Assembly: GCA_964187785.1 (NCBI GenBank)
Contig: OZ076415.1
Span: forward strand, 47,988,001 to 48,052,000
DNA from: Amphiscolops sp. MND2022
Lineage: Eukaryota
Direction: 5' to 3'
Length of the DNA: 64,000 nt
A model generated the notes under the pieces. It did no database searches, was not told the origin of the DNA, and saw only the letters and a list, made by a program, of their open reading frames with translations. This document shows, piece after piece, positions 1-52,285 of this stretch. Positions within the stretch are counted from its first letter, which is position 1; each line of letters opens with the position of its first letter. The position numbers were made by a program, and so were the translations under genes.

Positions 1-827
1 ATTTCGCCGAAAACGGAATTTTGGAATAACCATTTTTTGTCAGAAAAATCCATTTTTCGCAATTTTGGAGACGTATTCGCTTTGTCTAATGCTTGTGACA
101 CTCAAATCAAACATGGTACCAATGAATTGTTGAAAAAAGCAGCTATTTCTCTCGGACACGATTTAGAGTGTAATTGACATATGAGAGCTCCGTGTGGGAA
201 CAGACAAACTCTCAAGTGAGTAATCATCTGAGTGACAAGGTGAGTCAATCCAAAGCAACGCTATGAATGTTCGAAAGCTTTGGTGAGTCCCTGTAAATCA
301 GGAAGCTGAGCAGAAATCTCAAGGACAGGTTGGTGTATACCACTAGGTTCCAACCGATGACTCGGTCATAATTTAAATTTTGGACACAAACGGCAGCAAA
401 ATTGTTATGACTCCGGTAATGTTTAAACATCAGAAGTACTGCGACTGGCGAACAGTGAACCCCACAAGGCAAATCAATTTCATGCGAATCTTCGGGAAGA
501 ACTCAATATGAAGTATCGAGATACACTAGGGTTCCAAAAAGACACTCATTTCACTGACGAAAACTTTCAAAGCGCAAAATCTTTCAACATTGATTTTACA
601 AAAACGTCTCAAATGGTAAAGTCACTCAAATTTCATCAGCAATACAAGGGTATTTTTGTTTTGAAATCAAAATGAAAATTTCATGTTTAGCAATTATTCG
701 CAAAATGATTAAAATGAACAGCCACAACCAAAAACACTTGTAACTTTGTCGAAACTATTTTTCTACAGTAAAAATTGAAGATTTCACAGTTTGTGATCAT
801 TTTGCGGTGTATATTCTTGAGGGCGTT

Positions 828-1271
828 TGTAAAATTCTTGGGGTTTTTCCAATTTTGAGATCTCTTTTGCTTTAGATTTCTTCAGAGCGGGGCGTGAGGA
901 GAGCTTTACAGAAAAGATTTTATTGTCGATGTTTTACAGTCAACTATTCAATAGAAGCCCAAAATTTCTTGTCTTCAGATTATTGTCATCAATGTTTTAT
1001 TTTCTTCACTTTATTGTTTCCTGTCATGCGGAAATTAACCAATATATTTTTTATTAAAAACTGCCCATGCGTGTATTTAGAGGGTGGGTCGTAATATATT
1101 TTTTATTGCTTCTTTTATTGTTCCGGAAATTACTATTTGCGTTCCGGGGGTGGGTTTTATTATTAAGATTAAATATTCATAGCTCCAATTTGGGGTCAAA
1201 TCAATTAGTGAGGGTTTATATTAATTAGCTCCACTAAATTTAATACATTCTAATATTCAAAGAATATTACA
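828..1271 (-). repeat. 3' LTR (444 bp)
   Basis: Same sequence as 13071-13514 (offset 12243; the ORF track gives the same 66-aa ORF in both). Termini TGTAAAATTC / GAATATTACA form a 9/10 inverted repeat. Confidence 0.97.
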
Positions 1272-1291
1272 CTACCCGACTTTGATTCTTT
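1272..1291 (-). promoter_or_regulatory. Putative polypurine tract (imperfect)
   Basis: Minus strand reads AAAGAATCAAAGTCGGGTAG immediately before the 3' LTR. Purine-rich but interrupted; called mainly by position. Confidence 0.45.
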
Positions 1292-1350
1292 TACTCGCCG
1301 ATTTAAAATGTTCATCGAAACGTCGATAAAGTTAGTAGTTTTCTTTCCTT

Positions 1351-3579
1351 TCAAATGTGACCTGTTCGTAGTTGTCTATTGAGTTGTGAGTAGATTGGGG
1401 CATCGGGCTCAGGGTTTCGTGTTTCTTTTAGTTGAGATTCTGGAATCAGCAAACTGTTGTTTCTCCACGGAAATTTTTCGTCATTTTCCAATCCTTCCAG
1501 ATAATGGTCTTCCACCATCATTATCGGTTTCAGTGACACCTTTTGATTGTCCAGTTTATGAGAGAATGGTAGAAATTTATGTAGTCTCTTGTATCTGTGT
1601 AGGGCATACGTAACACCCAGGTGGAGTGCTGTACTGACAAAGAATACTACCAAGCCAATCGCAAGGTGACTTTTCCATGACAGATAATTGTTGAATTGTT
1701 TCTCCAGGGACGGCTTTAGAGCTGTGAGTTTCTGAGCAATTGGCTGTGCAATATAATTCAAGTCTGAACGATAGGAGTTATCCGGTTGGGATTGTAGTTC
1801 TAGTTTCAACGAACTCAGGAGTTGAATATTCGCTTCCACTCGTGTGTTGTAATGAGGGAGCTGGTCCACTGTTGGAATAAGGCTAAACAGTCTAGCCATT
1901 GGTTCCGGCAGTGTTACATTGAGTTTCAGTGGTGGGACTTTCATGCAAGTGCTAAGGTCAGATCTGATTCTAACGTTAGGGCCGATCAATTGTTTGCCAC
2001 AGCTGAGACTCACCAGGCATATCCGACAGCCATCTATCATTGTAGATCCTGCCGTGGTTGTTGCATTCATGTAGGATTCACGAAACTTGAAGTTGGATGA
2101 GGTTGAGGTTATGAGCCATATTCCATAACCTAGGTTCGTTGCTTTCTCTTTTAGCGGGAGTGTCACAGCTTCGGTGTCGCAGACTTCAATTGCGTCCATA
2201 ACATTTCCAAAATAGAGTACTGCCAAGCATGACGCATCTGATGTTTCAGTTGCCATGGTTTCGTGACAAATCTTATATTTGTTGGAGCCGATGCACTTTC
2301 CCAGTTGATCACGTGTTACCAATGCTGTTTCTCTTAGGTCTTCAGATATTGCGATATACTCCGTTTCTACAGTCCACTGGATTGCATACTCTGTTTCCAG
2401 TTGTGGCATGGGGACCACTATTGCTTTGTAGACTGTGAAAACTGTTTGGCGAGATGCCAGTGGAATAGACATTGTCATCAGCAAGCCATCGTCTAATGTT
2501 AGGACGTCTAAGAGCAGTCGCGCTTCATAATACGCCAGAAGCTCGTCCAAGGGAATAGCCAAAGTTAGTCTGTCTCGGGATTGTAGCTGTTCTGTTGCCA
2601 CCTGCTGTAGAATAATTTCCAGAGATTCTTTCGGTAACAAAGACATCGGGACATATTGCGTGAGTAAGGAAGGTATTGCGTTCATGATGTTCATCTGGAA
2701 GGCATACAGTGCTGCTCTGTAGGACTTGACATTACTGTAAATCAAAGATAGGAGTGATGAGATGGTGTCAAAGTTGAAGTTCACTTGTTGTCGTGTATAG
2801 AGCAGTTGATCACAATTTCTCATCTCGTGGATATTTTGCTGAAAGGTGTTGAACTGTTTCTCAATTGCTCTCCAGTTTTGGTTTTGGGTCTCAATGATTT
2901 GTCTTTGGATGCCATGTAACATCTCTAGTTCCTTTGATACTCGGAAAAACTTAGCATCCGTTGAGTTTGCCAGCTGCTGGATATTTTCGCCCAAAGATAT
3001 CGCGTATTCTCCCAGTTTTTCAATATTCCGTGCGTTCTGTTTTGCTTTTGCCTGACATGAGCCGAAAATACCCATAATTCCACAATCTCCAGAGCCAAAC
3101 ATTATGCCACCTCCGAATAAACCGATTGCACCTACCGCTGCTGCTGCTAACGGGAGAGCTCGTTTCTTCCGTGTACTTTTGTTTTCTTGTGTACCCTTTA
3201 GGAAAGATGCCACGTCACCCTTGATTTTAAGCAGGTCGTTTTGTGCAAATGAAATCTCCTTTTGTGTTTCTCTGAGGAGCCAGTCCATTTTGAAATCTAC
3301 TTCACTGGTATTTGTGAAGTTGAGATAACAGAAGTACGTTGGGGTTTGCCACATATTTTGGAGTGACTGTGCTATTTGATCAACATTCGAAATAAGGGTC
3401 ATTTCGAAGCGTGGGAAAGGGATCAAAAATTGGACATTGATAAATTTTTCTACCAGGAGGATTTTGGTTTCTTCATTAAAGAATATGCCTTTGTCCAAGC
3501 TGCCTTGACGGCTAGTAGTCTGAGCTATGTGAATAAAGATAAATAACAAGAGCATTGTGGGCTGAAGTCTAGGTCTCAC
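1351..3579 (-). CDS. env: Envelope glycoprotein, class I fusion type (F-like)
   Basis: Hydrophobic signal MLLLFIFIHIA (first ATG at 3555; the track start is a GTG). Furin site RKKR followed by fusion peptide ALPLAAAAVGAIGLFGGGIMFG. Heptad-repeat helices, Cys-rich ectodomain, N-glycosylation sequons, TM segment LAIGLVVFFVSTALHLGVTYAL and a tail with YSQL. Located between pol and the 3' LTR. Confidence 0.88.
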   Translation of the reverse strand: MRPRLQPTMLLLFIFIHIAQTTSRQGSLDKGIFFNEETKILLVEKFINVQFLIPFPRFEMTLISNVDQIAQSLQNMWQTPTYFCYLNFTNTSEVDFKMDWLLRETQKEISFAQNDLLKIKGDVASFLKGTQENKSTRKKRALPLAAAAVGAIGLFGGGIMFGSGDCGIMGIFGSCQAKAKQNARNIEKLGEYAISLGENIQQLANSTDAKFFRVSKELEMLHGIQRQIIETQNQNWRAIEKQFNTFQQNIHEMRNCDQLLYTRQQVNFNFDTISSLLSLIYSNVKSYRAALYAFQMNIMNAIPSLLTQYVPMSLLPKESLEIILQQVATEQLQSRDRLTLAIPLDELLAYYEARLLLDVLTLDDGLLMTMSIPLASRQTVFTVYKAIVVPMPQLETEYAIQWTVETEYIAISEDLRETALVTRDQLGKCIGSNKYKICHETMATETSDASCLAVLYFGNVMDAIEVCDTEAVTLPLKEKATNLGYGIWLITSTSSNFKFRESYMNATTTAGSTMIDGCRICLVSLSCGKQLIGPNVRIRSDLSTCMKVPPLKLNVTLPEPMARLFSLIPTVDQLPHYNTRVEANIQLLSSLKLELQSQPDNSYRSDLNYIAQPIAQKLTALKPSLEKQFNNYLSWKSHLAIGLVVFFVSTALHLGVTYALHRYKRLHKFLPFSHKLDNQKVSLKPIMMVEDHYLEGLENDEKFPWRNNSLLIPESQLKETRNPEPDAPIYSQLNRQLRTGHI

Positions 3580-3605
3580 ATTTTTAAAGTTTTGTACTAA
3601 CAGTA

Positions 3606-3941
3606 TTAGGATAGCTCAATCTCCATGTAGTCCAAGAGGTCAAGGAGTTTTTTCTTCAGATGCTGTTGTCCTTTCATAGTCTTTGTTAGTGTTTGGAGTG
3701 AGTGAAAGAGGTCCTCAAATTCTGGTGTTTCTTCGTCAATGTCCATGATACTGAAGGTGCTCGTGTTTTCTGTTGTCGCTTTAATAAAAAGGGGTGCACA
3801 GCATCCACATTGTTGAGTTTGAATGGTATGGATAAAGATTGGCTGTAGCTGTCGCGGCGGAGTCCATTTAAAAGGTGTCGGAAAGATGATTTTCATGGGC
3901 ACTAGTGTAACTCTCACTGTCAGGCCTTGTGATGTAGACAT
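3606..3941 (-). CDS. Small orphan ORF (111 aa) directly upstream of env
   Basis: ATG start, same strand as env, ends 27 bp before the env ORF. Contains a CGCC motif and an acidic/helical C-terminus. No recognisable family. Confidence 0.35.
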   Translation of the reverse strand: MSTSQGLTVRVTLVPMKIIFPTPFKWTPPRQLQPIFIHTIQTQQCGCCAPLFIKATTENTSTFSIMDIDEETPEFEDLFHSLQTLTKTMKGQQHLKKKLLDLLDYMEIELS

Positions 3942-4302
3942 TTTGGGTTAATTACTGTGAGTCAAAGTTGTCATTTCATATATGTAGGTTAGGGCTCTTT
4001 GGAATTTGTTGAATATTCAGAATGTTGAATGTTTTGGGTGACTTCTGCTACCGGCTGAATTTCAAGTAAATTTCAGGAGGAATGGGGTCGTTGGTACCCA
4101 ATGTAGAATCAATAAATGTTCAGCAGTCTTGTCAGCGTCTTGGTTATTAAATTCAAGCAAATAGTTTCCGCAACCATGGAAGATTTTTATTAAATAGACG
4201 TTGTTTTATTATTTGTCATTGTTCAACCTGAAGTTTAATAATCTGGCCTCATTAGAATGTACTCGCCCGGAAATTTTCAATTTCCATTTTAATTGAATTG
4301 TT

Positions 4303-4707
4303 TTGTTGACCCAAGCGTGGGTGGCGTCTCTTTGTTTACTGTTGTTTTATTGCCAGGCTATCTGCCAAAATGTTGAACTCTGCCAAAATCTGAACTTTGC
4401 CAAAATGTTGTTCGAGTTCTTTCAGAGCATGGATTGTTACAAGATTTCCTTGACTTCAAATATTGAGTTGGAGTGTTGCAACGACGGAACAACTGTCCTA
4501 GTGGATTCCAAAAAAGTCAGTTTCTCTCCTGTGGTTGATCCGAAATGTGGTGTCATTACTTCATCTGCAGTTCAGTCCAGAGAAGTCATGAGAGAACAGG
4601 ATGGATGGCCAATATTCGTTGTCGGCATTGGCATAGCTAGTTTAATTCTCTTCGTAATCGGGAGGGTGCTGTTCAAATTTGTGCGCAACAGAGTAAATCA
4701 ATCGTAA
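4303..4707 (+). CDS. Putative small single-pass membrane protein, antisense to the element
   Basis: Cys-rich region, C-terminal TM segment IFVVGIGIASLILFVIGRVLF and basic stop-transfer KFVRNR. The signal-like N-terminus starts at TTG; the first in-frame ATG is about 100 nt downstream. Confidence 0.45.
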   Translation: MLTQAWVASLCLLLFYCQAICQNVELCQNLNFAKMLFEFFQSMDCYKISLTSNIELECCNDGTTVLVDSKKVSFSPVVDPKCGVITSSAVQSREVMREQDGWPIFVVGIGIASLILFVIGRVLFKFVRNRVNQS

Positions 4708-4820
4708 ACTCAGCGATTCGCAACTCAGCTTACTTAGAGTTATATCTAGTCTTTCCTCTGTACTGGTATTAATTGTTTAGTTAGCTTTATCCATCCCGTG
4801 ACACCTTTTTATTTTGTACA

Positions 4821-5687
4821 ATGTTGTTGAAGGCCCATGGGTTTAACGTTAATGGTCATGGACTTTTTTCAGATAACATGGACAATTTTAATTTGTTGTT
4901 AGAATTGTGTCAAAGTCACTGTAAAGAAGTGGAGGCAGTATCACTCAGCGAAGCATGTAGGTTCAAAACTGCTTGCATCGTTAGAGGTGTTGCCTGCTCA
5001 TACAAACAGCCTGAGTTACAGTCGCTTATTCTGAATTCCACTGAGGTAGGCGAAATTTTGCGTTCATTCAAGAACTGGGGTGAGGAGAAGAAGAATGTGC
5101 AGTTCCCTGACACAAGGCTTTTAACTGCCCTCATGCCAAAAGAGAATGTCTATGATATCGCCAGTTGGTTCAATAGTGCCATTGTTGACCTACAAGTTGT
5201 TCATGAGCCTGTTCTGTTATTAAGTACCGGAAATTGTCTCACAGGGTTTCACGCAGACAGTCCGCCAACAGAAATTGTGGCTTCATTACTCCGCGGGCGG
5301 AAACTATGGGTTTTCGCTAGTCCCGGGTCTAAGTCCGCTGCAGTTTTGGTTAAAAGGCCCGAGGACAGTCATTTCCAACAGTTTATTGAAGATATGGTCT
5401 ACGGACGTTTTAAAGATCTGTCGTACTGTGTTCAGGAACCCGGTGATACAGTTTGTTTCCCTGCAAGGACTGTGCATTTAGTTCTCTCTGTAACTCCTAG
5501 TAATGATTGGAACTGTCTTCTGAGTCACACTATTTTACACGAAGAGGAGGAAGCCGCTAAGATGGAGACGAAGTTTTTCAACAGGTATTCTGACCAACGT
5601 TCCCGAGTCGTACAAGGTAAAAGGAACAAGAGGTCCGGGGTCACGAAGAAGCGATTTTCAGCACGCAGAAGAGTGCAGCCAAGATGA
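4821..5687 (+). CDS. JmjC-domain Fe(II)/2-oxoglutarate oxygenase, KDM2/KDM7-like, antisense inside the retroelement
   Basis: ATG start, intronless, 288 aa. LLLSTGNCLTGFHAD...LLRGRKLWVF...QEPGDTVCFPARTVHLV matches the KDM2/7 pattern (CLMS..GCYTDFHID...G.K.F...G.T.FIP.GWIH.V). HxD...H triad plus the 2OG-binding Thr and Lys are present. Basic NLS-like C-terminus. Confidence 0.82.
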   Translation: MLLKAHGFNVNGHGLFSDNMDNFNLLLELCQSHCKEVEAVSLSEACRFKTACIVRGVACSYKQPELQSLILNSTEVGEILRSFKNWGEEKKNVQFPDTRLLTALMPKENVYDIASWFNSAIVDLQVVHEPVLLLSTGNCLTGFHADSPPTEIVASLLRGRKLWVFASPGSKSAAVLVKRPEDSHFQQFIEDMVYGRFKDLSYCVQEPGDTVCFPARTVHLVLSVTPSNDWNCLLSHTILHEEEEAAKMETKFFNRYSDQRSRVVQGKRNKRSGVTKKRFSARRRVQPR

Positions 5688-5807
5688 TGGTTAGTGATGT
5701 CCTTTTCATACTTTAGTAGTGTTTTGTCGTATGCCCTATCGGCTAGGGGTTAGGTCATGCTAGTTATCTGACGTAAATTTGGTGTTGATGATGATTTCCG
5801 TGCATAA

Positions 5808-6366
5808 GTTCGCAGTGGCAAAATCGGAATTTTCTGCTAATGTAGGATTTTTTTTTCTTTTTTAAACACTTATTTTTTTTCTCTGGTGGATGAGCGCATC
5901 CGCTATCACCCTGTAGTGTAGTTCTCATGGAGTACAATCCGGGGAAGCCCAATATGCACTGATGTTTGCTTCCACTTAGCCAGTCGCAGTGGCAAAATTG
6001 TCGTTTTCGTGGAAACTTACTGAGGTCGAAAAAAAAATTGTAAATGGGAGTATGGAGTTTTTCTTATATAATTTTGCTTGTGCGCGCTTTTTCTATCACC
6101 CTATCATGTAGTACCCATTTAGGGGTGTCTGTCAAGGTATTTTCCGTGTAGGCATCTTGCCTCGTTTTCTCAGTCGCAGTGGCAAACTGTCAATTTTTAT
6201 CATAGGGTCAGATAGGATATTCTTGTCAAATAGGGTATTTATAGGTCAGCAATGCTTTTTGAAGGGACAATAGATACCCTATCTTGTAGGCAAAACTCTA
6301 AGGTGTCCATCGATGTGTTTTTTGTTAGGTTAGAATGTCATTTTTTTTATGTTCGCAGTGGCAAAA
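5808..6366. repeat. Four copies of TCGCAGTGGCAAA in degenerate ~180-bp units
   Basis: The CGCAGTGGCAAA core starts at 5811, 5985, 6175 and 6354 (spacing 174, 190, 179). A secondary CTATCACCCT motif recurs near 5904 and 6093. Confidence 0.8.
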
Positions 6367-6619
6367 TGAGAAGATATCGGATTTCAGAAATCAAGATAGT
6401 CGATTCACTGCTCTTTTTTGGAATAGTGTCGTGTCTAAGGACCTGTCCTTGAAGTTTTTCTGCAGAAAATTTTCAATCCATGGGTTTTCCGGGGTTTTTG
6501 CGGGTTGGGGAAGTGAAGGAACATAGATTTTTCACGGTTCTCAAGGGTAAATTCGGTTGGTTGGTAGTGTTGGTTAATGTTAACTTACGGGTGTCTGGTA
6601 TGGGAAGGTTGGTCCTTCA

Positions 6620-8641
6620 TTAGGCGTAGGGTGCTCTGTGAGGAAGTACACAAACGGTTATCGTCAAATTCGTATGTTGGAAGACTTCGTTCAAGAGGTT
6701 GCGTACTTGTTGCCATGGGAGTTGGTCTCTACCACATCCAAGTTTGGGTAATCGGATATTATCTACTCCATACTGTTGAGCATGGTCACGCATCAGTAGT
6801 AGGCTTGAACGCAGTGATGCAATTGAAGGCTTGTGGAAAAATTTTCGTTTCGTCACCAAGTTGTATATCCATCGTCGGGAATATTTGTCATAGAATGCAA
6901 AAACTGAACCAGGAGCAAGGTTCTTCGATGATTGTGTTTTTATTCGGGGGTATAGCCTGTCAAACTGGTTGGCTATACCTACCCCCATTGCAAAGTCCGA
7001 AGACACGCAGTGTGCCATACTAGAGGACGAACAGAAGATGTTGTCATAGACTATGTTGACATTGTTTCTTGTCTGACATATTTCATTGATGTCTGGGCGT
7101 GATCTTTTTTCATTCGATCCTTCTTGTTGAGATCCAGGTCTTTGGACAAATTGCATTTGCTGGCGTTCTAATCTGCGGTTTTTGAGTAGATCAATAAAGT
7201 TACGTGCTTCTTTAGTTTCCCCTTGTGATGTCCGTTTTATGGGGTTTGGGGTTTTCAATTGTCTTCCCGCAGCTTCAATCAGTTTAAAGTTTGGTTGAGG
7301 TTGTGTGGCTATTCTTTCTGATCTGCGCACGGGTTGTATTGTTTCAGGGTTGTCATCCGAACTGTCGGAAGTTTCCGGTATGTCTGCAGTCAGGTTGACT
7401 GGGGGTGTTAGTCGTATCCTCGTATGGTCCGGTTCTACTATGGTTTGGTTCTCATTCGCGGTATTGTGGTTTATCGCTGATGGTATAGGTAGTGGTGGGT
7501 GTTGTTGGGCCTGATTGTTTTGTCCAAAGGAAATTGAAACTCTTACTGGGCTATCAAATGTTGTCGGTTGGACAGACTCAACAGGTGTGTCATCTTGTAG
7601 TAATGATGGGTAACCTCTGTCGAAGTAATCTGTGTCTCCTCTGTTATGTCCCAGTGATGGGTCCGTTCTAAAATTTGCAGGATCAATTTCGGGGATATCT
7701 TCAACTTGGTATTGTGGTGTAATAGGTCTGATCCTGATTCTATGCACAATCTGTGTATAGTTTGTTCCAGTTTTGCGAATAAGATAATTAGAATCTGTCA
7801 ATACTTTTTCCACTCTATAGAGTGCATGCCATTTTTGTATTAATTTGGAGCTGAAGGTAGATTGTTCTGTCAGTTTAGGGTTTAGTAGGAGGCAAAACTG
7901 GTGTTGTTGTAATGGGTTTGCACGTGCTTTCTGATCATAATACCTGCGGTATCGTGCGAAAGACTTTTCGAGACTCTCTTTTGTTTTGGAGAATTTCTTT
8001 AACATTTCATCTCGTAAAGATTCCACAAAGTCGTAATTGAAAGCTGCCTTTTGGATACATGTGCTGTAGAATCTGAGATCCAACGGTTTCATTGGTTCTC
8101 TGCCGTGGAAGAGTACTGTTGGTGCGCATCCAATAGAAGTATGGTATGATGTATTGTGGATGAAAGTCGCCAAAGGTACGTACCGATGCCAGTTTGTGAA
8201 TGTACCATTACTGTTTAGTTTGAGTATTCTTGTGAGTGCTGCGTGTGATCGTTCAACTACTCCAATTGTCTGTGGGTGCTTAAGAGAGGCATGTGTAATT
8301 TTAATTTCTAATAGCTTTGTCAGTTCACTAAAAAGTTCTGAGACAAATTGTGTTCCAAGGTCCGATATTATTTCTTTTGGTATAAAGCTGTGATTGAACA
8401 TAATTGAAGCCAATGCTGCAGCTACTGATGACGCACTTATTGTGGTCAAGGGTACCGCAAAAAGGTATTTGGAAAAGACATCAATTGCTGTAAGCACATA
8501 TTTATACGGAGATGAGGGAAATGCTCCCTGAATATCGATCTGCATTATGTCTCCGGGAAGGTAGTTTTTGAAGATAGTTCGCTTAGCGGAGGTTTGAGTC
8601 GAGATGGTTGGACAAGTTTGAGTTGTAAACAGGTTGAGCAA
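6620..8641 (-). CDS. pol: Integrase catalytic core + GPY/F-like module + low-complexity linker + C-terminal TARG1/OARD1-type macrodomain
   Basis: DDE residues in QIDIQG, IISDLGTQF and VERSH; KLIQKWHALY module. C-terminal ~140 aa AHCVSSDFAMGVGIA...YNLVTK...LPKLGCGRDQLPW matches the TARG1/Poa1p macrodomain pattern. Lies in the -1 frame relative to the upstream pol ORF. Confidence 0.93.
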   Translation of the reverse strand: MLNLFTTQTCPTISTQTSAKRTIFKNYLPGDIMQIDIQGAFPSSPYKYVLTAIDVFSKYLFAVPLTTISASSVAAALASIMFNHSFIPKEIISDLGTQFVSELFSELTKLLEIKITHASLKHPQTIGVVERSHAALTRILKLNSNGTFTNWHRYVPLATFIHNTSYHTSIGCAPTVLFHGREPMKPLDLRFYSTCIQKAAFNYDFVESLRDEMLKKFSKTKESLEKSFARYRRYYDQKARANPLQQHQFCLLLNPKLTEQSTFSSKLIQKWHALYRVEKVLTDSNYLIRKTGTNYTQIVHRIRIRPITPQYQVEDIPEIDPANFRTDPSLGHNRGDTDYFDRGYPSLLQDDTPVESVQPTTFDSPVRVSISFGQNNQAQQHPPLPIPSAINHNTANENQTIVEPDHTRIRLTPPVNLTADIPETSDSSDDNPETIQPVRRSERIATQPQPNFKLIEAAGRQLKTPNPIKRTSQGETKEARNFIDLLKNRRLERQQMQFVQRPGSQQEGSNEKRSRPDINEICQTRNNVNIVYDNIFCSSSSMAHCVSSDFAMGVGIANQFDRLYPRIKTQSSKNLAPGSVFAFYDKYSRRWIYNLVTKRKFFHKPSIASLRSSLLLMRDHAQQYGVDNIRLPKLGCGRDQLPWQQVRNLLNEVFQHTNLTITVCVLPHRAPYA

Positions 8642-11600
8642 TTTCTGATGTAGCTTGCAATTTGTTCTATGTAATTCGGGCAGTAAAAGCGTCTACGAAA
8701 CTCGGCAATTGTTCTCGTTATTCCCAAATGTCCTCCTGTGGGTGAGTTATGTATTCTATAGAGGATTTCTTTTAGCATGTGTTTGGGTACACATACTTGT
8801 TTATAAAGGATAGTACCGTCATGATCGTAATAGTTCCGTTTAAGGATTCCATTGTTTATGGTTAATCGCGGGAGTTGTTTCCGATATTTCTGTTCTTCTC
8901 CTGATGAATAAATATTATGTGGTGGTTCTGTACCTTCTGTAAGCCAGGTTGTCACCTTCGAGAGTAAGGCGTCATTTTGTTGTTCCCTTTCTAGAATTGC
9001 CACCGATGTCTCAAGTTCTGGATAATTGTCCATCGGGTTTTGTAGTTGTAGTGCGTTGATCGGGAGTGCTTGTTTGTATCTGGTCAATTGGATTTCTTCA
9101 TTTTGGGTTGCCAGGGCTTTTAGGTGTTGTGAGGCATTCTCAAAGTTTCCAGATTGTTTCAATGTTATTAATGTGTTCATATCAACCACTTGAAGTAGGT
9201 CATCGGGGAATTCTTCAGAGAAAAGTTCATTTATTGTATTGTCTGGTAATTTAGCTCGAATATCAATCTCTATTTCGCGTACCGGAATACGGTCTGTAAG
9301 TTTTAATTCTACTGTTTCGTTTGGGTTTGTTTGCAGGCGAGATAAAAAATCCGCTGCTGCATTTGCTTTCCCAGGAATATGAGCGACTACTATGTTGAAT
9401 GTGGTTACTCTGTCGACATAGTTCCAAAGGGATGGAGGAATTGTCTTGGCTTGAAAGAAGCGTGTGAGGCTTTTGTTATCTGTCAGTATCAGTACAGGTT
9501 TTTCGCTACCCCATATGAAGTGTGAGAAGGTTTCCAGGGCAAAATATAGTGACAGGAATTCTTTGCAGTAGATTGACATTTTCAACTGAGCTGTGTTGAA
9601 GACTTTCGATCCAAATGAGACTGGTGCGTATGACTTTACATCTTCACCTTTCACATTTTTGACATAGTCTTCAATCATGAGTACGAATCCACTCGAATGG
9701 TAACTTGCGTCACACAAAATTACATATTGTAGTCCTGGTTTTGCCAATCGTAGTGTTTGCGTTGCAGTTGTTTTGAGTTTCTCCTTCAAGGTTTCAAACG
9801 AATCCAGTATTTCTTCTGTCACTTCAAAAGCCACATTTTTCCGCAGTAGTTTATAGAATGGTATGAGATGCTCATTCAAATTTGGGATGAAGTTTCTGAA
9901 AAACTGAAGGAAACCTATCAGTCTTTTTACTTGTTTAACAGATTTTGGTATCTCCAGTGTTTTCAAGAATTTCTCTATTTTTTCTTTTTCTGGTTTTAGG
10001 CCTTCTTTGGTAATCACATTTCCAAGAAAACTAACTTGTTCAGAACCAAATACACACTTTTCTGGGGATAATTTGAGTCCTGAGCGTCTGAGACATTGGA
10101 ATATTTGTCTGAGGTATGGTAGGAGTTGTTCCGGTGATTCGACTCCACATCCGATGTCATCCATGAATTGTGTACACACATTTGCTGAGAGGCATGGTTC
10201 CAAATAGTTTCTCACAAAAGCACTGAATCCAGTTACAGATCGGTTCAATCCTCTCGCTAATCGCTGATAGGCTAGGGTTCGTGAAGCAAAGTTGAATGCC
10301 AATAGTTGTACCGAGAGTGGGTCTGCCATTTGTACACAATGGTAAGCCTGAGAGCAATCAAGTTTGCAAAACAGTTTCTTTCCGGCAAAATGAGCAGTTG
10401 TGTCTGCCATTGTTGAGATTGGAAAGTTATTGTTATGGTAATCATGAAGGAGTAAATGGTTGATACGGCGTAGGTCTACTAGGATTCGAAGTTCTCCATT
10501 AGTTTTACGGTGTGCGAAAATTGGACTGCTATATTTTGAATGGTTGAGACTGGTGATGATTCCAAAGTATTGGAGAAGTGCTAGTTCTACTTGTAGTTCT
10601 TCTCGTAAATGTATTGGCGTCGGTGGGCTTTGCGTGTAGACAGGTTTATCATGTTCAGGAGTCAATTTCATGGTGATCTCTGAATTATAGCCGACGTCAA
10701 ATCTATGTTTGGCAAATATATCCGAGAATTCAATCAGTAGTTCTTCTAATTGCTGTTTTTGCTGTCGATTCAGTACCGAGTCTTTCCATTGGAATCTTTG
10801 GAGGAATGTTTCACGGTAGCTAGCGTCCATTTGTGGGTCTATTTTATCTAACTCTTGGAGCTTCAATAGTTCCTCATAAATCCTTTTTTCCACTCCTTGG
10901 AGTTTTTCTGGATTTCGACAAGATTCAGGGGTTTGAAACCAAAAATTTTTGTAGTCTGGTTGAGGTCTAGGAGGTTGCGATTCTGAGCTAAAAGTCTGAT
11001 CTATTACCAATTGGTTTATTTCAGTGACGAAATCATCTGGGTTTTTGAATTTTGCTAAAGTCAATAATTGAGGGTCAATTGGTGTTAAGGTTTCGGCTTG
11101 TTGGGGTGAGAGAAATTTAAAGAGGGCTATGTCTGAATTTCGTGGTATCGTGACTTCATTTTCTTGAAGGTTCAATGCAGAAATGAATAGGTGACCTGAA
11201 GAGTCAACTTTCGAAAGGGATGAGGTTATACACAAACCAGTTTTTTCCTCGAAACTAGTTTTCGGTTCGACTATCCCGCAAAGCTCCGATAATTTATTCT
11301 TGGAGAGTAGCACACATTTTAAAATCGTTTGTTGGTTCGGGGCAATCGTTGTTTTCTCGACCGTTCTGATTGAGTACTGGGCTTTTGTAGTTTTCTCAAG
11401 TTTGTCCATTTCATTCAATTGTAATGTCAGGTCTGGAAGTTTCATCAAGTTTTCTTTTGGGTATAGTTCTACAGAGTTATTTTTGAAAAAAGGGTTTCCC
11501 AAAATAATACTGTTTGTATTGGGCAGGACAAGGAATGTTTCCCTAAAGGAATGATTGGCAATGGAAAATTGGAGTTCTATTTGGCCACGCACAGGTATAA

Positions 11601-11979
11601 GTTGTCCGGAAGCTAATTTCACTTTACTGACCTGTTTTGGTGTAGTGAGTTGCGGGATGTTTCCACAAGAAGATTTCAAGTCTTCATAGTCATGTTCACT
11701 GATGGCATTTGCAGAGGCTCCAGTGTCAATTAGAGCTTTTCTCGTTTCTTTAGAGGAAAATTTTAGTGGTACATAGGATAGAATATCACCCTCAAGGGAT
11801 ATGCATGCAGTAATTTGGTGGTCCTCTCTTTGTGTCGTTTCTTCCGTTTTGTCTTCATACTGGCGTGGCTCTACTCGTTTTTTGGTGCTGTTTGATATGG
11901 AATTTGCTGGTTTCTCTGTGCTGGTTGACGTTGAATACAATCTTTGGCGTAGTGGTTTGGGTATCCACAGTTGTAACAT
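8545..11979 (-). CDS. pol: Pol polyprotein: aspartic protease, reverse transcriptase, RNase H, integrase HHCC zinc finger
   Basis: Protease ALIDTGAS. RT LVDLRRIN, LDCSQAYH and FMDD. RNase H CDAS, KEFLS, TDNKSL and ADFLSRL. IN zinc finger HNSPTGGH...CSTC. Overlaps the gag end in the -1 frame. Confidence 0.96.
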   Translation of the reverse strand: MLQLWIPKPLRQRLYSTSTSTEKPANSISNSTKKRVEPRQYEDKTEETTQREDHQITACISLEGDILSYVPLKFSSKETRKALIDTGASANAISEHDYEDLKSSCGNIPQLTTPKQVSKVKLASGQLIPVRGQIELQFSIANHSFRETFLVLPNTNSIILGNPFFKNNSVELYPKENLMKLPDLTLQLNEMDKLEKTTKAQYSIRTVEKTTIAPNQQTILKCVLLSKNKLSELCGIVEPKTSFEEKTGLCITSSLSKVDSSGHLFISALNLQENEVTIPRNSDIALFKFLSPQQAETLTPIDPQLLTLAKFKNPDDFVTEINQLVIDQTFSSESQPPRPQPDYKNFWFQTPESCRNPEKLQGVEKRIYEELLKLQELDKIDPQMDASYRETFLQRFQWKDSVLNRQQKQQLEELLIEFSDIFAKHRFDVGYNSEITMKLTPEHDKPVYTQSPPTPIHLREELQVELALLQYFGIITSLNHSKYSSPIFAHRKTNGELRILVDLRRINHLLLHDYHNNNFPISTMADTTAHFAGKKLFCKLDCSQAYHCVQMADPLSVQLLAFNFASRTLAYQRLARGLNRSVTGFSAFVRNYLEPCLSANVCTQFMDDIGCGVESPEQLLPYLRQIFQCLRRSGLKLSPEKCVFGSEQVSFLGNVITKEGLKPEKEKIEKFLKTLEIPKSVKQVKRLIGFLQFFRNFIPNLNEHLIPFYKLLRKNVAFEVTEEILDSFETLKEKLKTTATQTLRLAKPGLQYVILCDASYHSSGFVLMIEDYVKNVKGEDVKSYAPVSFGSKVFNTAQLKMSIYCKEFLSLYFALETFSHFIWGSEKPVLILTDNKSLTRFFQAKTIPPSLWNYVDRVTTFNIVVAHIPGKANAAADFLSRLQTNPNETVELKLTDRIPVREIEIDIRAKLPDNTINELFSEEFPDDLLQVVDMNTLITLKQSGNFENASQHLKALATQNEEIQLTRYKQALPINALQLQNPMDNYPELETSVAILEREQQNDALLSKVTTWLTEGTEPPHNIYSSGEEQKYRKQLPRLTINNGILKRNYYDHDGTILYKQVCVPKHMLKEILYRIHNSPTGGHLGITRTIAEFRRRFYCPNYIEQIASYIRNCSTCLQLKLVQPSRLKPPLSELSSKTTFPET

Positions 11980-13040
11980 ACATTTTTCGAGTAACTGGTC
12001 TCTTCAATATGTCCATCATTAGATGACTGTTGTAGCTGTGGGTTGTTGTTACCATAGTTGTTTTGGTAACCTCTGTTATTGTTGTAGTTGCCATAGTACC
12101 CTCTGTTGTTGTTATATCTACCTCTTCCTCTGTTGTTTCCTCGATTGAAGTTTCCTCTTCCTCTATATCCTCTCGAGATATTGTATCTGTTGTTACCTCT
12201 GTAGTTAGAGTTTCTGTTCTGATTATTGTCGTTGTTGTAATTCTGGTTACCCATGTTTTGAGAGCTGAATGTGTTGATTCTGTTTGACATTTCAGTTTGG
12301 TGTTGTTTGATTTCATCCTGTTGTTGAGTTAATTTAGTTAATGCACTAACCAAGTTTTCTGAGAGCGTTGTACTCACTTCGTTGAATGCGTCTCTGGACC
12401 AATCGTCACTTGGGCACAGCTCAAAGAATACCATTTGTCTTCTGGCCACAGTGCACAAATCTTGAACTGTTGCTGCTTCATTTTGGTCTAGGAGTTTTCT
12501 TTTGATGAAGTTTGGCATTGAGTTGGTGAAAATCTCCTTGATTCTTCTGTTTCTTTCATTCGTTGCATTGTCCAAAACTGTCTGATTCGCTGCTTGTGCT
12601 GCTGCAACTCTGTCAATTTCAGCTTGGTCATTTGGTGGGTTAGCTGGTGGAATAGGTGCAAACACTGGGTCAGGATAGGCTTGTGTTGCTTTGATTTGCA
12701 CTTGTACGAGGAAGTCTTCTGGGCTACCAGTTTTGTGGTCAAATTTCAAGTTATGTAGTTGTAGTTTGTGTAATTCTCGAAGATTTGGGTTACAATAGTG
12801 GTTGCGTAGAGCTGTAATAGCTGCATCGAAGTTATCTCTTGTAGCTTGTGGTAATGTTCTAAAGAATTGTAGGGCTTGGTCTAGTAGGTGTAGTTGCAGG
12901 AATTGTGGTCGGTTTGCCGCTGGGATGTTCCCCACATTGATCAAGCTTCTGAGTAGACTCTCGAAATCTGGCCAATTTTCATCTGGTTTTCCGCGGAATG
13001 GGTTGAGTGTGATGTGTGGTTGAGGGTTTGCAGCTGCCAT
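11871..13040 (-). CDS. gag: Gag (capsid + nucleocapsid with CCHC knuckle)
   Basis: ATG 30 nt after the 5' LTR. N-terminal PFRGKPDENWPDF typical of retrotransposon Gag. RG/N-rich region. Knuckle CYNCGYPNHYAKDC (CX2CX4HX4C). Confidence 0.93.
   Translation of the reverse strand: MAAANPQPHITLNPFRGKPDENWPDFESLLRSLINVGNIPAANRPQFLQLHLLDQALQFFRTLPQATRDNFDAAITALRNHYCNPNLRELHKLQLHNLKFDHKTGSPEDFLVQVQIKATQAYPDPVFAPIPPANPPNDQAEIDRVAAAQAANQTVLDNATNERNRRIKEIFTNSMPNFIKRKLLDQNEAATVQDLCTVARRQMVFFELCPSDDWSRDAFNEVSTTLSENLVSALTKLTQQQDEIKQHQTEMSNRINTFSSQNMGNQNYNNDNNQNRNSNYRGNNRYNISRGYRGRGNFNRGNNRGRGRYNNNRGYYGNYNNNRGYQNNYGNNNPQLQQSSNDGHIEETSYSKNVCYNCGYPNHYAKDCIQRQPAQRNQQIPYQTAPKNE
11877..11883 (-). promoter_or_regulatory. 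Candidate -1 ribosomal frameshift slippery site A AAA AAC (gag-pol)
   Basis: In the gag frame CCA AAA AAC GAG TAG. The heptamer is correctly phased, one codon before the gag stop, and pol is open in the -1 frame. Confidence 0.7.
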
Positions 13041-13052
13041 TGTCTTTTCCTC

Positions 13053-13070
13053 ACTTCCTTCTTGTCACCA
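13053..13070 (-). promoter_or_regulatory. Primer binding site (primer tRNA not assigned)
   Basis: Minus strand TGGTGACAAGAAGGAAGT abuts the end of the 5' LTR; TGG is complementary to tRNA CCA. Confidence 0.75.
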
Positions 13071-13514
13071 TGTAAAATTCTTGGGGTTTTTCCAATTTTG
13101 AGATCTCTTTTGCTTTAGATTTCTTCAGAGCGGGGCGTGAGGAGAGCTTTACAGAAAAGATTTTATTGTCGATGTTTTACAGTCAACTATTCAATAGAAG
13201 CCCAAAATTTCTTGTCTTCAGATTATTGTCATCAATGTTTTATTTTCTTCACTTTATTGTTTCCTGTCATGCGGAAATTAACCAATATATTTTTTATTAA
13301 AAACTGCCCATGCGTGTATTTAGAGGGTGGGTCGTAATATATTTTTTATTGCTTCTTTTATTGTTCCGGAAATTACTATTTGCGTTCCGGGGGTGGGTTT
13401 TATTATTAAGATTAAATATTCATAGCTCCAATTTGGGGTCAAATCAATTAGTGAGGGTTTATATTAATTAGCTCCACTAAATTTAATACATTCTAATATT
13501 CAAAGAATATTACA
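13071..13514 (-). repeat. 5' LTR (444 bp)
   Basis: Direct repeat of 828-1271, followed in element orientation by PBS and gag. TATAAA and several AATAAA on the minus strand. Confidence 0.97.
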
Positions 13515-14344
13515 GCGTTTTTAGAAAAAGTGTTATTGTCAAAAGTTAGAAATCTGAATCAAAGGTACAAAGTTTCTCAAACCCTTTTTGTAACGAATAG
13601 CGGTTCTCGAGATATTGCATGATAAAATTCGAAAAATACAAAAAGTAAAAAAAAATAGCGAAGACTGTTAGCTACTAACAACATTTGTAGTTTTTCTGAG
13701 TTCAAAACGAAACAAAAACACAATTCTGGGTAAACTTTGAGGCTTTGTGTATCTATTGGTTATTCACCAATATTTTTAAGCTGCCGACCTTCATAATCGC
13801 AACTGACAGTAGGTACGCTTTATGGATGATGGAAAGGGAACGGATGTCATGTTATAAAACAAACTAATGGACTCTTGACAATCTGCGTTTACAACCACTT
13901 CTATTACCTTTCTGCATTCTCGCTTTTTGTCGTCCACTTCTCCAGCGTGAAATGTTTGAACAACTAGTGATTTACCTTAATTTTGTTCTGGGCTATATAA
14001 TTGATGAATTTTCAAGTGTAAACAATTGTATAAGTTCTTATTAATTCCTATTGAAGATTCATCTGAGCTTTGCCATTCTTTACATGTTAAACTCACAATC
14101 TAACAGAATCTCTAATAACCATTTCAATCCAACATCTCTTCTAAAAGCAATTTGAAATAAATACAAAATTGCCTACTAACTGCTAGGGCTACCATTATGT
14201 AATGGCAATCCGTGAAAGAATAGTCAGGTGCCATAAAAAGTTGACAAAATTGAATGGAGTGATTCATCAACGCATTACGAGTTTCCACCCACATCTCGGC
14301 AATTCCAATTTTAAACAATTTTTTGGTGAACCCCTCCAAAGATT

Positions 14345-18196: not shown

Positions 18197-21100
18197 CTGA
18201 AACAAAATACAAGAAAATAACATGAGACATGAAAGCATTTTAATAGCTGCAGCCCATGATAAAATGGTGCTGCAATCCAAAAATGGTACGGAAGCTAAAC
18301 CAAAAACAAAAATTGTTCATTTTTTCTTATTAAAGAACTTTCAAAGAAATTTTACTGGAGCGAACACGGGGTGTGAATTCTTTCGAGAAGTTTTCTAGAT
18401 TTCATAACAATAACGAGTGAATGTACGGAATCGTATAATAACTCTCATCCTTAAAGCCTAACATAACTTTATCCAATTATCAATGCTTTCTTTGACTATT
18501 TATACGTAAAATACCCTCCCGCAAATTGGGGATTCTGTATACGTATATAAATAACGAGTGAATAAAAAAATTTCATTCATTTGGAATTTGTCAAAGTCTA
18601 ATTTGATTAGTTGATACTCTAAAGCATCCGTGCGATAGGCGAGGAAAGAAATTGTGCTGGACATACGTTAAAAACGGAAGGTGTGGTTGGGTTGGTGGGG
18701 TCGAAGCTGATGTAGTTGTCAATTTGGTAGAGTACCTGCACGAAAAAGTGCAGAAAAGACTCTGATATGTACTCTGGAGTGACTGTGGTCGTAGCGATGT
18801 CCACAATGGGCGACTTCTGTAAAGATTTCCGGTCGAATATCAACTTTTTCAGTGCATTGAAATGTCGCTCCGGTAACAGTTTTCTTTCATCTCCCACCTA
18901 AACATACCAACAAACTTGAATAAACTTTACACTAAGCAATGACGTTATTCTTAAAAATACAATACTTGATGACATTGGGTACATCCTGAAAGCTGAGATA
19001 CCTGAAAGCTGAATTTTTTCGCACGATGTTCAATAATTTTTTCATTCGAAAAATTGAAAACTCCAAAGGCTGGTCTTGAGAAAAAATAAGAATGTTGAAT
19101 ATTGTATATCTAGAAAAACTTAATTCTGTGGGGTTTGCTATCTGAGTGTTGAGGACTGGGGAATATAGCTGAAATCTCTTGGACCAAATGCTTCCGTGCA
19201 TTAAAATTGATGAAGCTTAAATCAAAGAATCTTTCAAGCCCTCCTGAGAACGCGGCGAAATCAAAAACTCAAAAATTCATATTGCAGATGCTTGGAACTA
19301 CTCAACTTATCAAAAATGGCTATATGCAGCAAAAAAATAGCGGAAGTTATAGCGGAAAAAATTTTTGAAGTAATGAAACATGTCTCAAAATTATGAACAT
19401 CGCCCAAACAAGCTGAAATCTCAATCGATTCTTGTTGAACTGGCTTGGCCCTTGATTCACCTTATGGTAGCTACAATAAATGGCCAGTGAGTGATACTTA
19501 CACATCTCACAAAAGCGCCTCTGTTGTCAAGGTCAACTATGAGCACGTCTTCATACTCGCAACTGCTAGTGACGTCAGGTCTGGCCTTGGCACTGGAAGG
19601 TACGAGAGTTCCAATGAGAAAAGGGGAAGGACACTTGGCAATCTCGGTTCCCAGCTCTAGACTGGTCATAGGCACAAACACATGTTCCCATGTGAGTGGA
19701 TATATGAGCGCATGCAACGCCATACCACAAGACGACAACACGCTGAGTTTGGAGCTCCAGAGCCACACCTTGCGTTCTAAAAGCAGTGAAGCGAACACAA
19801 GAACGAGAGATTTGGCATCCAAGTATAAAGGCAGACATTGTAAGTTGACATGTTCGTACGTTGCATCTTTTCGTTCCCTTCGGATTGACAGAGAATGCTG
19901 ACCCGGTTTCAACTTGGCGTGTTCAATGTAGAATGGGTACTTGATTTGTATACTCTCGCCAGGCGCGGGTACAGGACATTCGTACATGGACTGAAGTACT
20001 GTGAAAATTTGACATTGCTTCTTGACTAGTTTCAGCTCGCAGCAAATCTAAAATGTACAAACGTTTGCCTTCTTGTATCTGAAAAATTGCTGATTCAAAA
20101 TTCTAGGATTATAATTCCTCAAAATTATCAAAAATGATTCTGACTAATCGAAGTATTCATGAGAAATGATTCAATCGAAGTAACGAGTAAAAATTGGATA
20201 GCAATTGACAACTAACACTATCGAAAAGATCGAAACATCTCTGTTGACTGATGATGCAATAAACAGTAGGCAAGTATTCGCTGTACGACTTTTTCGACAG
20301 ACGACTACCGCCATAGGCTGCTTCGGGCGACGCAGTAGTAGTGGGTGAAACATTGCCGTTGTTTGCACCAGATGATTCATCCGGCCAGATACGACGACAG
20401 TAGGCGAACACCTGGCCCCCCTTATCATCAGTGAACATGAAGGAATATGTTTCATCCAGATCGTTCCGCTTCGGGGCGATGGAGTCGGGACCTGAACTGA
20501 CGTCCGGGAAGCAAAAACTGGGCACGTGTTGAAAGAAAGGACACTCTTTGGCATCGATGACATCTTTGTGTGGATACGAAGTGATGACAACTGGAACGTA
20601 TTCGTCTCCGCCTCCTGTAAAAATAACGGATCCCTGCAAAAACCCGAGAAAATAATCAATTTCAATCCATTTTTCAACCGGGTGACTTGAAATTCACCCC
20701 CATGTCAAAGGGTTACTGAAAACGGGTGCTTTTCTTTCAGCAACATTAAACCACAGACAGGTGCAACTTTCATATCAAGGGTTGCGCCTGTTCCAAAACA
20801 ACTTTTGTGATTCTTCGTTTCGGTTTAGTTTTTTAACTGCAACTTTCACATTTGCGTATTATTTCAACCTATATTATCAATTGACAGCACTTCAGGAATC
20901 TAAAAGTCATTTTTCGAACGGAAGTATGTTGGAATAAAGTAGTGAAATTTCACCTGCAATTTTTTTGTGCTTCAGCCCAACATGTAGGGCCACAATAAAT
21001 AGCTGGGTGCTTTCTTTACTCCTCTCGTGGTTAAGAGATAGGGCACTGTCTCCGAGAGCACCACCCTCATTAGTACTTGAAACCTCAGTACCCGTCACAG

Positions 21101-44713: not shown

Positions 44714-46348
44714 AAATTTATCTTGAAATTACCATTTTCCATCCTGTATAATCAATCCTAAGTAGTTTGACTCAGGAGAGGCAACTGCCTCAGCCAATTG
44801 AATATCACTGAAAGCATTCAATTCTTGAACAAAAAACTTTATTACTGGAAGGATAGGGAACACTGAACAGTGGCCTTTCCGACTGAATGGTTTTTATCAA
44901 GCCAGCGAGAAAGCAGTGGCTGAAAAACCACTAAGTAGAAATTGATAATCACCCATTTTCGGTCACTAAAATATAACTACTAACCAGGGCAATACAACTA
45001 CTATGTACTAACCAGGGCAGAGTCTGACAAATTTCGTGACGAATTTCAAGATTACTCGAACTAAACGGCACCAAGTTCCTACTACTGCACATTACAGAAA
45101 GGAAGTGCATTCAAAACAGATTCCTTGAAGTTCAAGCTGTGAGCGCTTTCTCTTCCTTTCAGATCACTTGACCAACGAAAAGCACAAATTGACAACATGG
45201 GAACCAACAAGAAAACAGCCACGACGGGACTCGAACCCAAACCCTTCTACATAGGAGACAGACACCTTATCCATTATGCCACGGAGCTGCGAGCATAAAA
45301 ACATTCAGCTAAAAGTGATCATTACCTGAAACGCAACGTCATCCATTCATCGTTCCAGCGCAGACCAACGAAAAGCACAGTGACAACATGAGAACCGTTA
45401 CGAAAACAGCCACGACGGCACTCGAACCCGCAATCTTCTACTTAGGAGGCAGACACCTTATCCATTAGGCCACGCGGCTGTGAGCATCCAAACATGAAGC
45501 TGAAGATGAAAGCTAACTGAAAAAGGGCGGAGTATTCTCTCGTGTAATATCGGAACTCAGCATCTGAGATAGAATCCAGGTCGAACTCGCGATGAAATCT
45601 AGCACAACGTCCGGGAGGTTAGGAAACGAAATCTACCACATTGAAAGCACAAAAACGCAACAATGAGAACAGACAAAAAAGCCGCGACGGGACTCGAACC
45701 CTCAATCTTCTACTTAGGAGGCAGACACCTTATCCATTAGGCCAAGCGACTGTGAGCATCCAAACATGAAGCTGAAGATGAAAGCTAACTGAAAAGGGAG
45801 GAGCATTTTCTCGTGTATTATCGGAACTCAGCATCTGACATAGAATCCAGGTCGAACCGCGATGAAATCTAGCACGACGTTCGGGAGGTTAGGAAACGAA
45901 GTCTACCACATTGAAAGCAACTGATAGCACAAACACGCAACAAAGAGAACAGACAAAAAAGGCGCGACGAGTGAGTCGAACCTAAAACCTTCTACATAGG
46001 AGATAGACACCTTATCTAATTTGCCACGCAGCAGCGAGCATCAAAACATTCACCTAAAAGTGGTCATTACCTGAAAACGCAACGTCATCTATTCATCGCT
46101 CCAGCGCAGGCGTACGAAAAGCACAAATTGACAACATGGGAACGAACACGAAAACAGCCAGGACGGGACTCGAACCCGCAATCTTCTACTCAGGAGGCAG
46201 ACGCTTCATCTATTAGGCCACGCGGCTGTGAGCATCAAAACAAGAAGCTGAAGGTTGTCATTACCAGAAAACGCAACGTCATCTAATCATTGTTCCAGCG
46301 CAGGCCAACAAAAAGCACAAATTAACAACATGGGAAGCAACAAGAAAA

Positions 46349-52212: not shown

Positions 52213-52285
52213 CAGCCACGACGGGACTCGAACCCGCAATCTTCTTCTTATGAGGCAGACGCCTTATCCATTAGGCCACGCGGCT
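52213..52285 (-). pseudogene. tRNA-Arg-body copy with anticodon mutated to CAT
   Basis: Loop CTCATAA; the anticodon stem carries a G-A mismatch. Confidence 0.7.

Follow-up and report, generated by a model that had tools for sequence, protein, structure and literature searches.

An antisense gene for a predicted JmjC-type oxygenase in a recombining cassette of a Ty3/gypsy-type retroelement with an env-like gene

Mobile elements evade silencing by their hosts through targeting or speed; some in plants and fungi do so with proteins that reverse DNA methylation. VANC, from the plant VANDAL transposons, is an anti-silencing factor encoded by the element itself; it keeps its own family de-repressed and is not an oxygenase. 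Complex retroviruses possess antisense accessory genes, and long terminal repeat (LTR) retrotransposons, rotifer elements included, possess extra open reading frames (ORFs). Fungal DNA transposons encode Fe(II)/2-oxoglutarate (2OG) dioxygenases of the TET/JBP type, which have moved between element lineages and were proposed to reverse silencing (Kojima 2025, PMC12730594). Ty3/gypsy elements carrying an env gene (errantiviruses), with envelopes of the F type or the gB type, are known across invertebrates (Chary & Hayashi, eLife 2026, PMC13524379). In a large DNA virus, LbFV, ORF11 and ORF13 are host-captured JmjC genes of 577-780 amino acids (aa) (PMC5381508). Here we describe an LTR retroelement from Amphiscolops sp. 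MND2022, contained in a stretch of 64,000 nucleotides (nt) referred to below as the window (contig ctg185606_95x_l of ENA assembly ERZ25074608), which carries on the strand opposite to gag, pol and env a gene for a predicted JmjC-type oxygenase. No report of an animal retroelement with a JmjC-type oxygenase of its own was found in full-text literature searches or in annotated protein sources.

Besides the JmjC ORF and a small ORF on the same strand, the long ORFs of the neighbourhood are gag, pol, a 111-aa ORF and an env-like ORF, all four of opposite orientation (Table 1). The JmjC protein displays the motifs TGFHAD (aa 141-146), GRKLW (aa 159-163) and PARTVHLV (aa 214-221). Conservation is absent from its first 19 codons; in most relatives the start is a methionine matching residue 20 (nt 4878), the confident part of the structural model begins at the same residue, and Met20 is probably the conserved start. 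The product is a bare predicted catalytic domain of about 270 aa with a basic tail, the latter being kept even in relatives that are only 20-30% identical overall. Used alone, the window protein matched PHF2, PHF8 and KDM7 among PDB sequences at E-values from 8e-4 to 0.4, PHF2 being the best, and the alignment with PHF2 and PHF8 includes an F-x-D-T-R-L stretch, the HxD motif, G-x-K and the second histidine. Relatives reach the Pfam JmjC family at E-values down to 3.6e-7.

Two alignments were used for profile searches and modelling: A1, a shallow one of 21 close relatives, and A2, in which A1 was broadened by relatives of 20-30% identity to 36 members, 22 of which match the Pfam JmjC family at E<0.01. 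The A1 profile found no match among PDB sequences, while the A2 profile retrieved PHF8 (3.1e-7), KDM7A (7.9e-6), ceKDM7 (1.5e-5) and PHF2 (2.7e-5), followed more weakly by KDM2A (5e-3), JMJD6 (9e-3) and TYW5 (0.065); JMJD5 was not found. AlphaFold gave a pLDDT of 36 on A1, and a pLDDT of 86 with a pTM of 0.81 on A2. When the resulting model was compared with PDB structures by Foldseek, the top 50 matches were all JmjC oxygenases (E 2e-8 to 1e-6, probability 1.00), led by TYW5 (2.2e-8) and JMJD5 (2.5e-8) together with PHF8, PHF2, KDM7A, JMJD6, FIH and KDM2A. Among viral models (BFVD), only JmjC/cupin proteins of giant viruses and phages were retrieved, and no retroviral or retroelement protein.

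The putative active site is well conserved. The columns of the PHF8 metal triad are matched by His144, Asp146 and His219, the second lysine of the PHF8 K-G-E-K stretch is matched by Lys161, and Thr141 lies just before HxD; we take the counterparts of Lys161 and Thr141 to be 2OG-binding residues in the PHF8/KDM7 structures. Across A2, His144 is found in 34 of 36 members, Asp146 and Lys161 in 32 of 36 each, His219 in 33 of 35, and threonine or serine at position 141 in 28 of 35. Alignment and structural model together support a predicted JmjC fold with an intact Fe(II)/2OG site. By sequence the subfamily is KDM7/PHF8-like; in the structural comparison the hydroxylases TYW5 and JMJD5 tie with PHF8 and KDM7, so that by fold either substrate class would fit. 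The original prediction, made from the DNA alone, had described an ATG-initiated 288-codon gene with the three motifs above and a Lys/Arg-rich tail, lying antisense to gag/pol/env within a retrotransposon and encoding a JmjC protein with an intact Fe/2OG site and neither a PHD nor a CXXC domain; in all these respects it agrees with what we found. It had further placed the protein closest to KDM2/KDM7 and JMJD6-like enzymes, which the profile ranking bears out (PHF8, KDM7A and PHF2, then KDM2A and JMJD6) while the fold fits JMJD5, TYW5 and JMJD6 equally well.

In nine element copies drawn from two assemblies, a JmjC gene occupies one shared antisense site, with the end of pol on one side and the 111-aa and env-like ORFs on the other. 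Copies L001, L004 and L009 belong to the same assembly as the window, and L002, L003, L007 and L008 to a second one, ERZ26859043. Amino acid identity to the window JmjC protein is 99% for L004, 65% for L001, 64% for L009 and 47-66% for L007, L008, L002 and L003. The complete order gag, pol, antisense JmjC, 111-aa ORF and env-like ORF is common to L001, L002, L004, L007, L008, L009 and L010. Directly upstream of the JmjC gene and on its strand, the window and the related copies L001, L002, L003, L007, L008 and L009 bear the small cysteine-rich ORF, whose body contains a conserved cysteine motif and a C-terminal transmembrane segment and belongs to no Pfam family. A hydrophobic signal-like segment precedes this body, in another frame in L007 and L009, and a pyrimidine-rich sequence ending in CAG is found ahead of the body in all copies. 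The frame change and the pyrimidine-rich sequence make a short intron possible, and the small ORF may possess a signal-like first exon. Upstream of the cassette lies a conserved non-coding block (Table 1) containing a GGAAATT...AATTTCC palindrome at about 4269..4285. Relative to L007 and L008 this block is as conserved as pol (72%), whereas positions 5696..6650 are not alignable; it may act as a promoter inside the element that drives the antisense cassette or, alternatively, as a sense-strand signal.

The cassette is far more diverged than the remainder of the element. The window and L001 share 98.5-98.6% nt identity over 827..4438 and 5810..13514, with sharp breaks at about 4438 and 5810; their gag, pol, 111-aa and env-like proteins are 98-100% identical, as opposed to the much lower figure given above for JmjC. 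Similarly, the backbones of the window element and L009 are 90-94% identical and their cassettes about 69%. At four-fold degenerate sites in codons of conserved residues, identity between the window and L001 is 0.26 in JmjC, which is the random level, against 0.92 in gag and 0.99 in env; across JmjC alleles it ranges from 0.18 to 0.38 while the proteins remain 51-69% identical. The proportion of nonsynonymous differences (pN) between the window and L001 JmjC genes is 0.24 and that of synonymous differences (pS) is saturated. For the pair L007-L008, the ratio of nonsynonymous to synonymous substitution rates (dN/dS) is 0.56, although dN/dS values serve here as lower-bound arguments given that dS is saturated. 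Three cassette alleles within one genome are as diverged as whole elements are between the two assemblies, for which the four-fold identity of pol is 0.35-0.39. Conservation of the protein despite saturated synonymous sites, combined with the sharp breaks, is strong evidence that JmjC has long been constrained and that the module has been exchanged by recombination. JmjC and the small membrane-protein ORF thus constitute an old, selected cassette recombining between near-identical elements. The existence of homologues at 50-99% identity, together with a constrained protein despite randomised four-fold sites, also places the JmjC ORF far beyond chance.

The four degenerate repeats with the core TCGCAGTGGCAAA (Table 1), where 0.14 would be expected, are present in L001, L004 and L009 as well, and the right-hand cassette breakpoints at 5810 and 5981 coincide with such repeats. 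Two other origins of the divergent segment were considered and ruled out. Editing or hypermutation is inconsistent with the counts of transitions and transversions (80/108) and with a pN far below pS; a nested foreign transposon is inconsistent with the lack of terminal direct or inverted repeats at the cassette and with its occurrence at the same site in every relative. In a separate comparison with L007, from the other assembly, DNA identity was 84% on the env side of the element (828..4010) and 72% on the pol side, a gap indicating that mosaicism in this element family is not confined to the JmjC cassette.

The JmjC family is small. An exhaustive HMMER search among 1.84 billion representatives recovered only 75 relatives (clusters), none longer than 383 aa, and no canonical lysine demethylase (KDM) at E<1e-3. 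This lends no support to the proposal, made in the original prediction, of a captured and retro-processed host demethylase. As there is no close host KDM relative, any capture would have to be ancient and its source is not traceable; moreover, template switching to an mRNA of the host would not be expected to leave an antisense insert. The family members are without a name in every source searched, including a protein search with A2, and no relatives turned up in JGI metagenome contigs. Distant relatives occur in short Logan contigs, which may be RNA- or DNA-derived. The two best-sampled JmjC alleles comprise at least 8 and at least 10 distinct protein variants, located on different contigs. 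In L003, the JmjC ORF is open within a heavily degraded element and its product is devoid of the catalytic aspartate; loci were picked via intact JmjC proteins, so that the openness of ORFs in degraded elements says little. Distant members at 24-31% identity were observed in repeat-rich settings at L006 (10001..10885) and L011 (10001..10783). The former, P0079, adjoins an Ulp1-type protease and a 1228-aa C2H2/endonuclease-VII-like ORF, whereas the latter, P0069, is found in DNA rich in transposable elements, 2 kb downstream of a reverse transcriptase ORF on the same strand. Several types of mobile element may have members of the JmjC family associated with them.

The carrier is an animal element of the Ty3/gypsy type that resembles an endogenous retrovirus and bears an env-like gene. 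Its LTRs are 100% identical, have TG..CA ends and are flanked by an intact 5-bp target-site duplication, GCGTT, read directly from the sequence at 823..827 and 13515..13519; the identical LTRs and intact duplication indicate that it was recently active. A putative primer-binding site (PBS) abuts the 5' LTR, the gag ATG follows some 30 nt further on, gag encodes a zinc knuckle, and pol shows the order protease, reverse transcriptase, RNase H and integrase (PR-RT-RH-IN). The gag protein is 99-100% identical to those of L001 and L004, two sister copies in which pol is a single 1786-aa ORF. In these copies and in the window, the gag and pol reading frames differ and overlap, as is usual for these genes. 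The 111-aa ORF, 78% identical to that of L007 at the aa level, has no Pfam match and no recognisable domain. The env-like ORF has no homology match in Pfam or among PDB sequences. Its N-terminus is signal-like, a hydrophobic segment comes right after an R-x-K/R-R site, and the ORF also shows a coiled-coil, a transmembrane segment close to its C-terminus, 12 cysteines and 7 N-x-S/T sites; this layout fits an F-type class I fusion protein, the name env being given by these features only.

A TARG1/OARD1-type macrodomain is located at the C-terminus of pol, which matches the human OARD1 structures 2l8r and 4j5r at an E-value of about 2e-24; its match to the Pfam Macro family is weak. The TARG1/OARD1 macrodomain is the fold of an enzyme that removes ADP-ribose. 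Among 5.8 billion proteins, only two other clusters of long pol proteins with a related macrodomain tail were detected, and literature searches yielded no description of a retroelement integrase with a fused macrodomain.

On balance, we lean towards the view that the element encodes a nuclear KDM7/PHF8-like oxygenase, made from its antisense strand, which counters repressive methylation on the chromatin of the element. The cassette would be transcribed on the plus strand from an internal promoter, for which the conserved non-coding block is the candidate, and the basic tail would carry the enzyme to the nucleus. There it would strip repressive lysine methylation of the H3K9me2, H3K27me2 or H4K20me1 type, as PHF8 and KDM7 do, and new or resident copies would thereby stay transcribable despite silencing by the host. 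That several cassette alleles, all ancient, coexist on one young backbone would be in keeping with an arms race between host and element. More tentatively, the cassette could be an exchangeable counter-defence module whose ancient alleles are kept in the genome and shuffled onto an active backbone since chromatin- or PIWI-interacting RNA (piRNA)-based silencing would select variety; with the TARG1-like macrodomain, the element would then possess two putative erasers aimed at host repression, the first acting on methyl marks and the second on ADP-ribosylation.

Several observations weigh against the favoured reading. The window protein scores 20.7 bits against Pfam PF02373 (E 6e-4), below the gathering cut-off of 24 bits, a marginal miss that is due to divergence and not to a missing domain. 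Fold similarity is only moderate (TM-scores of 0.42-0.52), TYW5 and JMJD5 scoring as high as PHF8 and KDM7. The tyrosine found in PHF8 between HxD and the lysine, which presumably contacts 2OG, is replaced by alanine or serine in the element JmjC family. Pfam detects no PHD, CXXC, chromo or other reader domain that would target the protein to chromatin. In scans of the plus strand with generic patterns, neither AATAAA nor ATTAAA occurred in the 1 kb that follows the JmjC ORF, and TATA did not occur in the 1 kb that precedes it. Finally, pol of the window copy is broken once, by a single frameshift, all other element genes being open.

The tie in fold scores also speaks for a hydroxylase like JMJD5, JMJD6, FIH or TYW5, with a substrate other than histones, in place of a histone demethylase. 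Possible substrates would include proteins of the host or the element (restriction factors, splicing factors, Gag and integrase are examples) and RNAs, tRNA among them. JMJD6 and FIH also rank high by fold, the A2 profile matches JMJD6 and TYW5 too, and the protein resembles JMJD5 and TYW5 in being a bare catalytic domain without a chromatin reader; the TARG1-like macrodomain, as a second enzyme reversing a modification of protein or nucleic acid, suggests a counter-restriction rather than a chromatin toolkit. Yet the sequence profile puts PHF8, KDM7 and PHF2 three to four orders of magnitude above JMJD6 and TYW5, and the alignment to these demethylases continues past the core barrel on its N-terminal side, taking in F-x-D-T-R-L. 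A hydroxylase is the main rival to our reading, and we judge it less probable. We find it improbable that the JmjC fold was kept without catalysis, as a scaffold or decoy binding chromatin or nucleic acid through the basic tail. PHF2, an example of a weakly active JmjC protein, is the best single-sequence match, and the tail is retained even in distant relatives; however, PHF2 has a tyrosine where 33 of 35 family members retain the second histidine, in addition to the aspartate and lysine, and retention of the site at 20-30% overall identity is what catalysis predicts.

That the JmjC ORF is a passenger, i.e. a captured fragment or nested insertion in neutral decay, appears very improbable to us. 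Some copies do have substitutions at catalytic positions (e.g. P0011, P0009, P0013), the L007-L008 dN/dS value is 0.56 and recognisable expression signals are lacking. On the other hand, the degraded JmjC examples sit in elements whose pol and env are broken too, the gene keeps the same position and partner ORF in all related elements of two assemblies, its protein is conserved while four-fold sites are random, and neither flanking terminal repeats nor an editing bias is seen; the contrast between backbone and JmjC identity, pN/pS and the four-fold sites already largely refute neutral decay. Even less credible is the idea that a host gene or domesticated copy just happens to be located within or beside element sequence. 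The open ORF of L003 in its degraded surroundings would agree with it, as would the members of L006 and L011, whose surroundings have no clear element assignment. However, the L003 protein has lost its catalytic aspartate, the window copy is enclosed by the identical LTRs of a young insertion, and the variants of the two best-sampled alleles are spread over different contigs, being multicopy like the element. Taken together, the predicted fold and site, the conservation, the position and the mosaic structure support the view that the JmjC ORF is a working accessory gene of the element, which we read preferentially as the KDM7/PHF8-like oxygenase proposed above.

Table 1. Features of the element and its antisense cassette, in window coordinates (the sense strand of the element is the minus strand of the window).
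Feature	Position	Strand	Remarks
JmjC ORF, ATG-initiated, 288 aa	4821..5687	+	intact; antisense to gag/pol/env
Pfam JmjC region (aa 134-225)	5220..5495	+	
JmjC key residues	His144 and Asp146, 5250..5258; Lys161, 5301..5303; His219, 5475..5477	+	
JmjC basic tail (aa 259-288)	5595..5684	+	about 13 Lys/Arg in the last 30 residues
Small Cys-rich ORF upstream of the JmjC ORF	4303..4707	+	body of 92 aa from the ATG at 4429 (4429..4707)
Conserved non-coding block upstream of the cassette	4028..4364	.	73-76% identical in L007 and L008
Cassette segment divergent from L001	4439..5809	+	identity 39-71% inside
Four degenerate repeats, core TCGCAGTGGCAAA, spaced 174-190 nt	5805..6377	+	between JmjC stop and pol stop
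Complete LTR retroelement, 12,687 bp	828..13514	-	from LTR identity and sequence reading
5' LTR (element sense), 444 bp	13071..13514	-	
3' LTR (element sense), 444 bp	828..1271	-	
PBS-like sequence, TGG-initial, abutting the 5' LTR	13053..13070	-	putative; read from the sequence
gag, 389 aa, CCHC zinc knuckle	11871..13040	-	intact; Pfam zf-CCHC, weak DUF1759
pol: protease, reverse transcriptase, RNase H, integrase zinc finger and core, C-terminal macrodomain	6620..11979	-	Pfam
TARG1/OARD1-type macrodomain, C-terminus of pol	6647..7051	-	PDB match
111-aa ORF just upstream of the env-like ORF	3606..3941	-	sense strand of the element; conserved in all related elements
env-like ORF, 734 aa from ATG	1351..3555	-	sequence features only

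Elsewhere in the window, a DENN-domain coding exon of a host gene (19460..19987, minus strand, E 6e-27) lies about 6 kb from the element, and a 670-aa ORF (33076..35088, minus strand) belongs to no Pfam family. No fewer than 60 genes for tRNA-Arg(CCT), or units resembling such genes, are arrayed in tandem over 45215..63661 (minus strand), running to the window end; the array consists of 194-nt and 475-nt repeats and accounts for the distinct composition of that region (GC 0.46, AT skew +0.33). Around the loci examined were DENN, Gal-3-O-sulfotransferase and Pygopus-type PHD genes as well as BEL/Pao elements, all pointing to an animal.

If the JmjC protein acts on chromatin, the element would be the first of the retrovirus-like kind to bring along its own eraser of repressive histone marks, and would offer a natural system for studying how integrated proviruses stay active. 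A cassette with deeply diverged alleles on backbones that are nearly identical is a signature usual at interfaces of conflict between hosts and parasites, and the association of the JmjC gene with a TARG1-like macrodomain in pol suggests that accessory erasers may be a wider, overlooked theme in invertebrate endogenous retroviruses.

Among described enzymes, the best profile matches are KDM7/PHF8/PHF2 (JHDM1D) and then KDM2A, with which the element protein has in common the HxD...H triad, the 2OG-binding lysine and threonine, the F-x-D-T-R-L stretch and the predicted fold. In KDM7, PHF8 and PHF2, an N-terminal PHD finger reads H3K4me3 and positions the JmjC domain. The element JmjC protein differs from these enzymes in lacking a PHD finger, in its size (about 270 aa against 900-1100 aa), in an identity of only about 12-15% and in being encoded by a mobile element rather than by the host. 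The small hydroxylases JMJD5/KDM8, TYW5, JMJD6 and FIH are of similar single-domain size and have equal or better fold scores, but profile support for JMJD6, TYW5 and JMJD5 is much weaker. Virus-borne JmjC genes are likewise known, but the carrier of the LbFV genes is a large double-stranded DNA virus, and giant-virus and phage proteins are the only viral fold matches of the element protein.

As an anti-silencing factor, the proposed enzyme would resemble VANC by functional analogy only, as there is no relation in sequence or fold and VANDAL is a plant DNA transposon. The TET/JBP proteins (PMC12730594) belong to another enzyme family, act on 5-methylcytosine in DNA and are carried by DNA transposons of fungal hosts. 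With the errantiviruses (PMC13524379), the window element shares its LTRs, gag, PR-RT-RH-IN pol and occurrence in multiple near-identical copies, and its downstream env-like ORF shows F-type sequence features; it adds a two-gene antisense cassette, the 111-aa ORF and the pol macrodomain, whereas that paper mentions no JmjC protein, macrodomain or antisense gene. The location of an extra gene between pol and the 3' LTR, on the opposite strand, has counterparts among the extra ORFs of LTR retrotransposons and retroviruses. None of these described extra ORFs is a JmjC gene in the literature found, whereas in the element described here two antisense genes form an exchangeable cassette.

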